DNA of 64,000 nucleotides from contig OZ251244.1 of the NCBI GenBank assembly GCA_965240325.2, forward strand, positions 1,351,379 to 1,415,378. The letters are read 5' to 3'. Every line of letters starts with the position of its first letter. The first letter of the stretch is position 1. Below the pieces are notes generated by a model that was not told the origin of the DNA, ran no database searches, and saw only the letters and a list, made by a program, of their open reading frames with translations. Below are positions 10,428 to 17,502 of the stretch, in pieces. Source of the DNA: Rebecca billardiae RCC1528. Its lineage: Eukaryota > Protista > Haptophyta. A program made the position numbers and the translations under genes.

Positions 10428-13400
10428 CTACAGCTGCAGCGCCTCGTCCGGTACCGGCAGGTCCGGCCGGAAGAGCTTGCACACGCCCAGCGCCATCAGC
10501 TGCGCGCGCTCGATGGTGAGCGTCGACGTGTCGAAGAACTGCCGGGGCGCAGCGGCGCGGCAGCGGGCGGGCGCAGCGCAGCAGGCGGGCGCGCGGCGCG
10601 GACAGGCGCAGTGGGCGGGTGCGTGGGCGGAGGGAGGTTGGGGGCGGCGACGGCGCGGTGCGCAGCGCGCGCGCGCGCGCGGCATGCCGGCTGCGCTCGC
10701 TCGGGCGCGCGCGCGGCGCTGCACCTGGCAGCGCGGTGCGGCCGCCGTGGCCGCCGCGATCGTCGCGGCGGCGGCGGGCAGCCCCGCGGCCGTCACGCCC
10801 TGCTGCTGCTGCTGCGGCGCGCTCGGGTCCTCGCCGCCGTCCATCACGCTGGCGAGTGGCGCGAGCCAGCGGTGCGTGAGCAGCAGCGCGTGTGCGCCCG
10901 GCCTCGCTGCGTGCGCGCGCGCGGGCGGCGGCGGCGACGGCGGCGCGCGCGCGCGCGCGTGAGGCGGAGGGCGCGAACGCGGAGCGCCCGGGGCCTCGCG
11001 GCGCTGTGCCGCGCCGCGCGCTCCGCCTCGCTCGCACCTGCGGCCTCGTATGCTAGCAGCTGCCCGATGGCGTCGACGCAGCCCGGCTCTGCGGAGGGCA
11101 GCGCTGCCGCCAGCATCTGAGGTGCGAGCGCACGCGCGGGGCGGGCGGCGCGGGCGTCGCGCCGCTCAGCGCAGGCGCCTGGGTGAACCCTAACCCTAAC
11201 CCTAACCCTAACCCTAGCCCTAACCTAAAGGCTCAGCCCAGGCGCCGGGCACGCGGGCACGCGGCCTGTCGGCACACCGGGAGGCCCGGCAGCCGCAGGC
11301 CCTCCGCCGCACGGGCACTCCCTCCCGCGCGGCGGCGGCGCGCGCGCGCGCACACGCGGCGCGCGCGGGCGGCGTGTGTGTGTGCGTGTGTGTGTGCGTG
11401 TGTATGTGCGCGTGCGTGCGTGCGTGTGCGTGTGTGTGTGTGCGTGTGTGTGCGCGTGCGTGCGTGCGTGTGCGTGTGTGTGTGTGCGTGTGTGTGCGGG
11501 CCGGTCGGCAGCGCCAGGCGGGCGCGCGCGCACCAGCTGCCGCGCGTGCAGCCGCTGCGCCGGCGTGCCGCCGCCCGTCGCCAGCACCGCCGCCGCCGCT
11601 TGCGCCTCCGCCACCGCCATCCCCGCCTGCGCGTGCGCTGCGGGCGTCGCGGCGCCGAGCGCGGCGCCGGCCGCCCACCCGGGGGGGAGGGCGGGGGGAA
11701 GGGTGGCGGCGGCCGCGGCATGCGCGCGGCCGAGCGCGCTCGCGACGAGCAGCTCCGTGCGCCGCGCCGCCGCCGCGCCGCCGTCGGCCGCCTGCGCGCG
11801 CGGGACACCCGATGGCGCGGCGCGGGCGCAGCGATGAGCGGCGCGGCGCGCGGCCGCGCGGACCGCGGCGGCGCGGCGGCGCGGCGGCGCGAGGGGCGTG
11901 GGCGGCGCGCAGTCCGGCCGAGGCCCGGGCTGCCTCCCCCCGCGCGATGGGGCGAGGGGCGAGTCCGGCGGCCGCAGGGCCCGCAGGCCGCCGCGCCAGC
12001 CCGGCCCTCCACCGCGCAGTCCGGCCGCGCGCGCAGCCGCCGGACTCACACCTGCAGGCTCTCCAGCATCTGCAACGCGCGCCGCTCCGCAGCCAGCGGG
12101 CCCAGTTCGTCCGTGGACGGCGGTCCGAGCAGCTCGAGGATGAGCTGGAGCTGGTGGGTGTGCGTGCGCCCGGGCAGCAGCGGCGCGCGCCGCACCATCT
12201 CCGCGATCACGCAGCCCACCGACCAGAGGTCGATCGACGGGCCGTACGCGCGCGCGCCCAGCAGCAGCTCCGGCGCGCGGTACCTGGCAAGAAGAAAGAA
12301 AGAAAAAAGAAGAAAGAAAAAAGAAGAAAGAAGAAAGCGACGAGAAAAGGAGAAAAAGGAAGAGGTGCCCAAAAAAGGGGGACGGAAAAAGAGGAAGCAG
12401 TATTATGGCACGAGAAGAGGGGCGGAGGCGGCGGGGCAGAGGCGGCGGCAGAGGCGGCGGCGGCGCCGCGGGCGGCAGGGCAGCGCGCGTGAGCGGTGGC
12501 GCCGCGCCGCGGCGAGCGCGCGCCGCCGACCGGCGCTGCTGCGCGGTGCACCGCGCGCCGCGGCGCATGTGTCACGCGCCGCGCACACGCGCACACACGC
12601 GCACACACGCGCACACACGCGCACACACGCACACACCAGCGCGTGACGACGTAGTCCGTCATCAGCATGGCGGACGAGGCGGCGCCGCCGTTGGAGGCGG
12701 CGGCGGCGGCGGCGGCGGCCGCAGCATCCTCGCGCCCGCCGCCCGCCATCACGCCGAGCCGCTCCGCCACGCCGTGCGGCCCAAGCGGCGAGCACTCGGC
12801 CGAGTCCGCGCCGCGCGCCGGCTGCGCCGCGAGCGCGTGCACGCGCGTGCGCGGCACGCGGCACGAGGAGTCGCCGTCATCGTCATCGGCGCGCGGGGCG
12901 TCGTCGGCGCACGCAGAGTCGTCGGCGTCGGCGTCGGCGTCGGGGTCGGCGCCGTCACTCTCGCCCGACTCGCCGCCGTCGCCGCCGTCCGGCGCGCCCG
13001 CCGCCGCCACCGCCGCGTCGAGCGCGGCCGCGTACGCGGCGCGCGTCGGCGTGCCCGCCGGCACCGACAGCCCAAAGTCGGTGATCTGAAGAAAGCGCCC
13101 AAGAAAAGAAAAAGCCCCCCCCCAAAAAGCCGCCCCAACAACAATGAACAACACATGGGTGGATGTTCAAAGGCAGCACGCAATACAGGCGAGGACAGGA
13201 GACGGAAAAGGCGGCGAGCGCGAGGCGATGAAGCAGCGCGTGGCGGCGGGCGGCGAGGGCGCGGGAGCGGGGGGCGGCGGCGGGCGCGTGAGAGCGGCGC
13301 CACGCGCACGGCGGCGCAGTGACACGCGTGCGCACGCGGCCGGCCGCGAGGCTGCCGCGCTGCCGCCGCGGCGCGCTGCCGCCGGTCGGGGCAGGGCGTG

Positions 13401-16400: not shown

Positions 16401-17502
16401 GTGCACGCACCGCCGCGAGAGCGCGCGCGTGAAGGCGTTCTGCGCGAGGAACGCCGTCAGCATGGCCACCTCCTCCGCCGACTTCTCGTGCGCGCAGACG
16501 GGCGGGCCGAAGAAGCCGTACGAGGTGGGCGGCGCGGAGAGCGAGCGCGCCGCGCGCGCCGCGCCGCCCGCGCCGCCGCCCGCGCCCGTGCCCGCGCCGC
16601 CGCCGCCGTCGCCGTCGTCGTCGCCGCCGTCGCCGCCGCCCGGCACGGCGCGCGCGGGGGCGGCCATCACCGGCGCGACCGGCGCGCGGAGGACGGTGTG
16701 CTGCGTCGCCCACTCGAGGATGTGCTCGTACAGCCGGCAGAACAGGTCGAACGTCGACGGCGGCCGCGCGGGCGGCTCGGCCGCGGCCGCGGCCGAGCCG
16801 CCGCCGCCGGCCGCGGGCGCGCCGGCCGCGGCCGGCGGCAGCGGCGGCGGCAGCGGCAGCGGCGGCGGCGCGGCGGCGGGCGCGGCGGCCGCGCCCACCG
16901 TCGCGGGGAGGTACTGGTGCGCCAGGTGCGCGAACGAGTGCGCCACGTGGTTCACGTGCAGGTCGCCTGCCGCACAGCACACGCCATGCGTGCAGAGGCC
17001 CCATTGTGTGAGCACAACAAAACACGATGGGGCGAGGGCGCGCGCACGCGAGGGCGCGTCGGCGCACGCTCAGCGGCGCGGCGCGGCAGGGCGCGGGCGC
17101 GCGCGGCAGCGCGGCGCGGGTCGGCTCGGCGGCGCGCGCACCGTGCTCCGTGGCGAACTGCACGAGCAGCGACGCCAGCTGCTCCCGGGACAGATTCGCA
17201 TGCTCGTCGAGCGCGCGCGCCGAGAAGAAGCCCGCGGCGAGCGCGCGGCGCGCGGCCTCGGAGTTGCGCTCCTCGTCGGCGCGGCCGCGGGCGGCGATGT
17301 TGACGGAGAGGGAGCGCGTGAGCCGGGACGCCAGCTTCACCTTGGACCAGAGCCGCGCCGCGCCGCCGTCGTCCGCAGGCAGCGCGCCCGGCGCGCGCGG
17401 CGGCCGCGCGCGCTTGGCCGGCCGGCCGGCGGCGCCGCCGGCCGCGGGCGGCGCGCGCGCGGCGCGCGGCGGCGCGGCGGCGGTCTTGCGCGGCGCGGTC
17501 AT
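10428..17502 (-). CDS. Multi-exon fusion: two cNMP-binding domains + MAP kinase (TDY activation motif)
   Basis: cNMP-A exons: [12 protein letters not shown]...FHLLEAGSV...[17 protein letters not shown]. cNMP-B: [20 protein letters not shown]...[10 protein letters not shown]...YEATV. Kinase exons: [65 protein letters not shown]|[26 protein letters not shown] boundaries seen. Exact exon structure at both ends is approximate. Confidence 0.85.
11186..11227. repeat. Intronic telomere-type repeat (CCCTAA)n
   Basis: About 6 CCCTAA/CCCTAG units in an intron of the cNMP-MAPK gene. Confidence 0.9.
13696..13803. repeat. Intronic degenerate telomere-like repeat (CCCCTTA/CCCCTA/CCCGTA)n
   Basis: About 15 variant 6-7 bp units, directly visible. 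Confidence 0.8.
13949..13990. repeat. Intronic telomere-type repeat (TTAGGG variants)
   Basis: gtagggtcagggctagggggtagggttagggttagggtaggg, just upstream (in gene sense) of the acceptor at ~13926. Confidence 0.8.
15292..15334. repeat. Intronic telomere-type repeat (CCCTAA)n
   Basis: About 7 units lying between two copies of the exon end encoding AFFIVLEG. Confidence 0.9.

Follow-up and report, generated by a model that had tools for sequence, protein, structure and literature searches.

Mitogen-activated protein kinases (MAPKs) are the textbook case of kinases whose activation depends entirely on another kinase acting upstream of them, and direct control by cyclic nucleotide monophosphates (cNMPs) is held to be a property of AGC kinases, i.e., of protein kinases A and G (PKA and PKG). 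In PKG, including the apicomplexan enzymes, tandem cyclic nucleotide-binding (CNB) domains sit N-terminally of a Ser/Thr kinase within the same polypeptide, and Plasmodium PKG carries a degenerate CNB domain. In other lineages, cNMP domains have been described on AGC kinases of Ostreococcus (PMC4143559) and, in the Phytophthora kinome, on AGC and CAMK kinases only (PMC3019232). The latter kinome also includes a PAS-MAPK, PITG_01203, in which a sensor domain lies N-terminal to a MAPK in one protist lineage, but the sensor is a PAS domain and not a CNB domain (PMC3019232). One Leishmania kinase, LmjF15.1200, combines two cNMP-like domains and PAS with a non-AGC kinase (PMC1266030). It belongs to the STE group, which provides the upstream tiers of MAPK cascades, and is thus not a terminal MAPK, and its lineage is unrelated to the one studied here. 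The survey of CNB domains by Kannan et al. does not mention MAPKs (PMC2246266), and a survey of MAPKs in 40 plant and algal species lists no CNB domain (PMC4363184). Here, we describe a gene from a 64,000-nt stretch of DNA of the haptophyte Rebecca billardiae RCC1528 (contig OZ251244.1, positions 1,351,379 to 1,415,378; the window), which encodes two CNB domains (CNB-A and CNB-B) followed by a MAPK.

The gene is nuclear and is encoded on the minus strand, and it extends from an ATG at 17502, the first of its open reading frame (ORF), to a stop codon at 10430-10428 that follows the residues PDEALQL. A preliminary description of the window had given exactly these ends, and it had proposed that a pair of PKA-R/PKG-like cNMP domains precedes a complete MAPK with a TDY motif in one gene. 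Pfam matches, sequence motifs, and orthologues confirmed this observation. The structural part of the earlier reading holds, and its functional part, in which the protein would be a cNMP-gated MAPK or a coincidence detector, is a possible role; the reading as a whole is partly supported. The spliced model contains 14 exons and 13 GT-AG introns and forms one frame of 1,160 codons. The exon boundaries were set with a nearly intron-free orthologue (L001, see below) as a guide and with the requirement for GT-AG. The intron donors follow the pattern GT[GA]NG and are mostly GTGCG, and all acceptors are AG. The lengths of 10 of the 13 introns are not divisible by three, and splicing still yields a single frame, which is colinear over its whole length with the orthologous genes. 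The sole uncertain boundary is the acceptor of exon 11, for which 11626 is preferred and 11791 is possible. The DNA of the window is GC-rich (52-86% in 2-kb bins, and 74-81% over the fusion gene); a GC content of 73% has been reported for the genome of Diacronema lutheri (PMC8379373). Together with the match to Pavlovales sp. CCMP2436 described below, these values suggest a Diacronema-like pavlovophyte. Because the region is so extremely GC-rich, long ORFs are no evidence by themselves and were not counted as such. Instead, the gene model rests on the domain matches, on the orthologues, and on the single frame that results when the 13 canonical introns are removed.

A protein search with the region spanning the junction between the two halves yielded two orthologue fragments, and their contigs together with two more represent four further genomes. 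L001 is a JGI metagenome contig of 4.7 kb (Ga0400246_003885) that carries the whole gene in four exons, L002 stems from a Logan assembly, and L004 is an ENA metagenome contig. L003 is scaffold MU631690.1 of Pavlovales sp. CCMP2436, in which gaps (runs of N) extend over the entire kinase and over a portion of the CNB region. CNB-B, linker, and kinase follow one another in this order on one strand in L001, L002, and L004. In CCMP2436, the N-terminus, pieces of the CNB domains, and the C-terminal tail of the MAPK are found in order on one strand within 11.6 kb.

The two halves are joined by a conserved linker of about 50 residues, in which the intron positions differ between the genomes. In L001, L002, and L004, the linker is split by a GT-AG intron of 181, 222, and 319 nt, respectively, which is frame-shifting in two of the three cases and separates LPxT(M/K) from VHSIGGHGRVRLPAEY. 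In the window, the same linker stretch is contiguous inside the CNB-B exon, and an intron of its own follows after RVRLP (intron 5, 14272-14544; 273 nt, in frame, without a stop codon, with the ends GTGCGCGC...AAG, and consisting mostly of an array of 20 copies of the 7-mer CGCGTGG). This intron is absent from L001, L002, and L004, in which RVRLPAEY is contiguous. Each genome therefore encodes in one piece what the other splits, which links the exons for CNB-B and for the kinase at the level of the protein. Furthermore, the C-terminal half of CNB-B shares a single stop-free ORF of the window (13798-15366, minus strand) with the N-lobe of the kinase, and the earlier remark that no intergenic-looking gap separates the two halves thus also holds.

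These observations bear on an alternative explanation, namely that two adjacent or overlapping genes or transcripts encode a CNB-only protein and an internally started MAPK, and that the fusion is a long-ORF artefact of GC-rich DNA. Stop-free frames are indeed common at a GC content of 74-81%, and a conserved Met (in KYSDRMAAL) is present about 50 residues upstream of the kinase. In addition, an unspliced L001 message would reach a stop codon after only 25 codons of the linker intron, and prokaryote-style gene callers split the locus at this point. However, the conserved Met lies within the coding sequence of the CNB-B C-helix, so that the 5' end of any mRNA for the kinase alone would need to fall within the CNB-B exon. 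Upstream of the kinase, in-frame ATGs occur nowhere but in the CNB-B coding sequence, and the use of the next downstream ATG (in LEVMECD) would delete the entire N-lobe. In the window, no stop codon occurs between the two halves, and in L001 and L004 the kinase comes into frame only after splicing, which lands exactly on conserved residues. The linker peptide is conserved and stays colinear in spite of intron positions that vary from genome to genome, and order and strand are the same in all five genomes. Two separate genes or transcripts are thus very unlikely, and an additional kinase-only isoform from an internal start may exist. The dN/dS values were 0.20-0.36 for the kinase core, 0.28-0.46 for the CNB core, and 0.14-0.67 for the 30-codon linker, all of them probably overestimates at this GC3 bias, and they indicate that both halves are under purifying selection. 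Taken together, the comparison of the five genomes leads us to conclude with high confidence that the CNB pair and the MAPK form a single gene.

Public annotations miss the fusion. The annotated CCMP2436 protein (T492DRAFT_846151) is a 491-residue "hypothetical protein" that ends inside CNB-A beside an assembly gap, and in the metagenome gene calls the L001 locus is broken up into two fragments of the kinase and a "CRP-like cAMP-binding protein".

The regulatory half is encoded by the first five exons, which, like all others, lie on the minus strand. Exon 1 (17142-17502, residues 1-120) begins with the start ATG at 17502, encodes a low-complexity N-terminus that runs colinear to those of L001 and CCMP2436, and ends with a G directly before the donor GTGCGCGC. 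Exon 2 (16411-16966, residues 121-305) encodes two conserved N-terminal blocks and the start of CNB-A. Exon 3 (15890-16060, residues 306-362) encodes the beta-barrel of CNB-A, and its GT-AG junctions restore the contiguous L001 sequence, including NRA(S/I)RGMSVGEL. Exon 4 (15354-15656, residues 363-463) contains the phosphate-binding cassette of CNB-A (15649-15602) together with the B/C helix, and it also encodes the N-terminal half of CNB-B. The rest of CNB-B is encoded by exon 5 (14545-15046, residues 464-631), with DFWGEAALL, an insert of about 55 residues, and SYEATVCAV, in which the Arg is missing, after which come the C-helix and the linker sequence. The final part of exon 4 (FFIVLEG with the GT donor) is duplicated 85 bp downstream in intron 4 (15373-15353 and 15288-15268), across an AACCCT array. 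The second copy was considered as the true donor and ruled out. Stop codons lie between the two copies, and because read-through to the second copy meets these stops, the first donor must be used.

Pfam cNMP_binding (PF00027) was found in the ORF at 15332-16162 (minus strand) with an E-value of 6e-11, and in the ORF at 13798-15366 (minus strand) with an E-value of 1.8e-5 and 25.1 bits, just below the cutoff of 27.5 bits. When the CNB half of an orthologue was compared with the sequences in PDB, the best matches were PKA regulatory subunits (PKA-R), i.e., yeast Bcy1 (3e-23) and RI-beta (4e-22), and PKG came next. The fold was modelled on the L001 orthologue. The AlphaFold2 (AF2) model of its CNB-A/B region (mef38e70b6ec9, pLDDT 78) contains two complete CNB barrels and a disordered insert in CNB-B; the CNB fold, an eight-stranded beta-barrel with N3A, B, and C helices, is thus predicted to be present twice. 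The best Foldseek matches of the model were the tandem CNB-A/B domains of PKG I-beta (7e-22) and many PKA-R chains, with E-values of about 1e-21 over about 300 aligned columns. The model superposes better on PKA-R in the kinase-bound holoenzyme (TMq 0.48-0.50) than on cAMP-bound PKA-R (0.35-0.38) and has an extended B/C helix; this holoenzyme-like fit may be a modelling artefact.

The CNB module thus resembles those of PKA-R (RI/RII, Bcy1), which gave its best sequence matches, and of PKG, to which it is matched by both structure and sequence. In contrast to PKA-R, the module is fused covalently to its presumed target, which is a MAPK, and the cassette of CNB-B is interrupted by an insert.

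The kinase half starts with exon 6 (14023-14271, residues 632-714), which encodes the N-lobe, including the LGHGAYG and VAIK motifs as well as the alpha-C Glu (in LLRELSVL), and has 77% identity to L001. Exon 7 (13827-13925, residues 715-747) contains MECDLHHIL, and exon 8 (13411-13506, residues 748-779) contains the catalytic loop and lies in the Pfam Pkinase match and the MAPK signature pattern. Exon 9 (12637-13085, residues 780-928) encodes the DFG motif, an acidic and Ala-rich insert of 137 residues in the activation loop, and the TDY motif. Exon 10 (12052-12283, residues 929-1006) encodes the P+1 loop, the APE motif (YRAPELLL), and the C-lobe, and has a Pfam Pkinase match with an E-value of 1.6e-10. 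Exon 11 (11534-11626, residues 1007-1037) covers the MAPK-insert region and ends with QRLHARQL, corresponding to the motif (A/S)ERLxxRxx that is common to L001, L002, and L004. Exon 12 (11038-11116, residues 1038-1063) was placed by GT-AG and the alignment of orthologues. Exon 13 (10725-10906) ends with APRCQ, and removal of an in-frame GT-AG intron of 186 nt (10724-10539) restores the conserved RC(E/Q)FFD. Exon 14 (10428-10538) encodes the conserved C-terminal tail, which is also found in L001, L002, L004, and CCMP2436, and the stop codon. A hidden intron within the activation-loop insert was considered and ruled out, as exon 9 does not contain any in-frame GT-AG pair.

The kinase strings quoted in the preliminary description were all recovered on the minus strand, i.e., MECDLHHIL at 13925-13827, HRDLKPAN at 13464-13441, and MTDYVVTRW followed by YRAPELLL at 12662-12259. 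The last of these is a spliced reading, with the 353-nt GT-AG intron 9 (12636-12284) between the W and the Y. Pfam Pkinase was found in the ORFs at 12955-13695 and 12046-12372 (both minus strand). The catalytic core is complete in the spliced model, with GHGAYG at residue 641, VAIK at 659, the catalytic loop at 762, DFG at 782, APE at 932, and the alpha-C Glu. TDY stands directly before the P+1 loop (VVTRWYRAPE) and is contiguous with it in L001, L002, and L004, and the catalytic loop reads HRDLKP(A/S)N...NxDC. The MAPK signature F-x(10)-R-E-x(72,86)-R-D-x-K-x(9)-C, a PROSITE-type pattern that was applied as a regular expression, matches the window model (residues 667-776, 110 residues) as well as L001, L002, and L004. 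A conserved C-terminal tail (FFDxxxLTxERAQ...) follows the C-lobe at the place where MAPKs have the L16 extension.

Searches of the PDB sequences gave a uniform result for the two lobes. The best 60 of 1,563 matches of the C-lobe were all MAPKs, with AtMPK6 as the best (2.4e-35), and so were the best 60 of 259 matches of the N-lobe (AtMPK6, 2e-14); many ERK2 and p38 entries are among these 60, and any non-MAPK ranks below them. AtMPK6, MPK4, ERK5, Fus3, ERK1/2, and p38 were among the matched proteins. By its best matches and its motifs, the kinase is thus an ERK-type MAPK, which shares with AtMPK6/MPK4, ERK5, Fus3, and ERK1/2 all catalytic motifs, the TxY-VVTRWYRAPE arrangement, and HRDLKPxN...C. 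It differs from them by a sensor module of about 630 residues at the N-terminus, by an insert of 35-137 residues between DFG and TDY, and by an acidic common-docking (CD) motif that is not conserved. A variable insert in the beta2-beta3 loop is also atypical. A short activation loop and the CD site are typical, not strictly defining, features of MAPKs.

A TDY motif followed by TRWYRAPE is also present in the CDKL and RCK families. It could therefore be argued that the kinase is a non-MAPK member of the CMGC group that bears TDY (CDKL-like or MAK/ICK-like), or that the gene is a decaying pseudogene copy, and the abnormal insert in the activation loop would be in line with either. However, the best 60 matches of each lobe were all MAPKs although structures of CDKL and of CDK are present in PDB, and the HRDLKP(A/S)N...NxDC loop together with the MAPK signature was found in four of four orthologues, with a conserved MAPK-like tail. 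The best complete single-copy relative in a search of representative proteins was a plant MAPK with a TEY motif. Against a pseudogene, the catalytic residues are all intact, and dN/dS is about 0.2. Both versions of this explanation are regarded as highly improbable. TDY is the motif of the plant group D MAPKs (PMC4363184).

The fusion protein shares with PKG the order of tandem CNB domains and kinase, but its kinase belongs to the CMGC group, with a TDY loop, the MAPK signature, and a MAPK-like C-terminal tail, and an AGC tail and GTPEY are missing. By these sequence features, it is not a PKG, because the kinase matches MAPKs only and does not contain DFGxAK...GTPEYxAPE.

In an exhaustive HMMER search with the C-lobe against 1.84 billion representative sequences, the only close relative was P0003, i.e., the gene of L004. 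The remaining top matches were multi-kinase or duplicated proteins, including P0004, a plant MAPK with TEY in which the C-lobe is duplicated, followed by ordinary MAPKs, and none of the 10 top matches that were scanned with Pfam contained cNMP_binding. Protein searches with the CNB half retrieved only the truncated CCMP2436 model and PKG-like AGC kinases; the candidate list was saturated by low-complexity words, and lengths of up to 1,116 residues were covered, so that an annotated full-length model of about 1,160 residues or more, e.g., from Diacronema lutheri, would have escaped. The nearest proteins with CNB domains and a kinase outside the clade (P0154, P0155, and P0157) have AGC kinases with DFGxAK...GTPEYxAPE. 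A metagenome scan with patterns of the linker and the N-lobe gave no match, and a six-frame search with hidden Markov models revealed no CNB domain at 80 ordinary metagenomic MAPK loci, the nearest ones retrieved (42-63% identity), of which about 25 have enough upstream DNA. In summary, a cNMP-MAPK was not found in protein, metagenome, or open-access literature searches, in agreement with the earlier statement that no characterised example was known. As far as these five genomes tell, the architecture is real and is conserved in a small pavlovophyte-like algal clade. The new element is the combination of domains, for which these searches gave no earlier description, whereas the PKG-style fusion of sensor and kinase and the MAPK are both known as separate kinds.

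We hypothesized that the CNB module might act as a built-in regulatory subunit in cis, as in PKG. A cyclic nucleotide, probably cAMP, would bind to CNB-A only. Binding would reposition the B/C helix and CNB-B, which is about 50 residues away from the N-lobe, and would thereby change the packing of the CNB domains against the kinase. This repacking would gate catalysis or the access to the long TDY loop. Phosphorylation of TDY by a MAPK kinase (MAP2K) or autophosphorylation would probably still be needed as a second input, so that the protein would operate as an AND gate. The whole statement, that one polypeptide contains a CNB module acting in cis as its regulatory subunit, is evenly balanced in our view. 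Direct gating of the MAPK by cNMPs is plausible, with a probability that we place at, or marginally short of, even. More tentatively, and with less than even confidence, the protein may be the first example of a MAPK, and of any CMGC kinase, that has its own sensor for a second messenger. Binding of cAMP or cGMP to CNB-A would then directly release or permit MAPK activity, and in pavlovophyte algae the three-tier cascade would be either bypassed by autophosphorylation of the long TDY loop or AND-gated with a cyclic nucleotide signal.

The state of the two putative binding sites is central to this proposal. In CNB-A, the cassette residues Gly-Glu...Arg-x-Ala-Thr are in register with GELALxYxxPRAATV of PKA-R (GELALLYDGMPRCATV in L001), and within the regulatory half conservation is highest in CNB-A (77% identity, dN/dS about 0.3). 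The residue after the cassette Arg is Ala in PKA and Thr in PKG. In CNB-A it is a Cys, which is nearer to the Ala of PKA and hints weakly at cAMP rather than cGMP as the ligand. CNB-B keeps the Gly-Glu pair (GEAALL). In all orthologues, however, a Tyr or His replaces the phosphate-binding Arg ((Y/H)xxTV), and in every orthologue the cassette is interrupted by a low-complexity, disordered insert of 25-60 residues that is modelled with low confidence. Because CNB-B is devoid of the key Arg and is interrupted by the insert, at most one CNB site, that of CNB-A, looks competent for cNMP binding.

These two features of CNB-B belong to a set of points that weigh against direct cNMP gating. The CNB-A cassette of the window has an Arg in place of the usual Pro (GVRRCAT versus GMPRCAT in L001), no pseudosubstrate or other autoinhibitory sequence was recognised N-terminal of CNB-A, and an RRxS/A inhibitor site as in PKA-R was not seen in the fusion protein. 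In addition, we know of no structural precedent for a CNB domain that inhibits a CMGC kinase. On the side of the kinase, the spacing between DFG and TxY is about 17 residues in ERK2, whereas the insert between DFG and TDY comprises 137 residues in the window and about 35-62 residues at the corresponding position of L001, L002, and L004, which is atypical for MAPKs. A DPSxxP-like stretch after HRWL, resembling the acidic CD motif, is present in the window only. Because of the activation-loop insert and the non-conserved docking motif, the regulation may differ from that of both PKG and classical MAPKs. Lastly, we infer the splicing and the single mRNA from genomic DNA.

Several of these points speak for a rival reading, in which the fusion is real but the CNB module would be a degenerate or re-purposed domain pair rather than a cNMP sensor, and would serve another ligand, dimerisation, scaffolding, or localisation, with the kinase being controlled via TDY only. 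The PKA-R of kinetoplastids binds nucleosides, and the cAMP-independent trypanosome PKA-R, which has an Arg-less cassette like that of CNB-B, was among the best structure matches of the module. Together with the absence of the Arg and the disordered insert in CNB-B of all orthologues, the change from Pro to Arg in CNB-A of the window, and the lack of a detectable autoinhibitory sequence, this makes the non-sensor explanation the main rival. However, the cassette of CNB-A is in register with that of cAMP-binding PKA-R, and no other part of the regulatory half is as well conserved. We regard a non-sensor role as less likely than not, and a sensor function of CNB-A, with control of the MAPK in cis, is retained as the preferred reading.

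The region that precedes CNB-A is lineage-specific and of low complexity. It contains a conserved motif, basic-x-S-L-S-(V/I), which reads TRSLSVNI in the window (17319-17296, residues 62-69), RRPSQLSVSL in L001, and RVRSLSISV in P0153. To judge from its sequence, it may serve as a phosphosite or as a docking motif for the MAPK of the same molecule. The two conserved N-terminal blocks look helical, and one of them is HVAHSxxHxAHQY. Neither matched Pfam or another family in a Pfam scan and in the ESM Atlas.

Short tandem arrays fill introns of the gene. They include telomere-type AACCCT hexamers, ACCCCTT (16 copies), and the CGCGTGG array mentioned above, and are located at 11186-11225, 13694-13803, 14396-14541, and 15292-15334. 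A (TA)40 microsatellite is located just 3' of the gene at 10251-10331. The flanking ORFs appear to be genes of their own: a 555-residue ORF lies downstream on the same strand (7498-9165, minus), and a set of long Ala/Gly/Arg-rich ORFs lies upstream on the opposite strand (17911-22913, plus). About 300 GGTTAG units (TTAGGG-type telomere) extend from 62167 to 64000 and are preceded by 18-mers that contain CCCTAA (62084-62166). Because the telomere array runs to the end of the window, the window represents a chromosome end, from which the fusion gene is about 45 kb away.

A conserved natural chimera of CNB domains and a MAPK would show that the PKG solution, i.e., the union of sensor and kinase in a single chain, arose a second time on a CMGC scaffold. 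Such a chimera would offer a simple system for studying the control of a kinase fold by a CNB module that did not co-evolve with it, and it could be a template for engineered, cNMP-controlled MAPK switches. To our knowledge, almost nothing is known about cNMP or MAPK pathways in haptophytes. In these algae, the fusion protein would link cAMP/cGMP signalling, e.g., in response to light or nutrients or in motility, to MAPK output.

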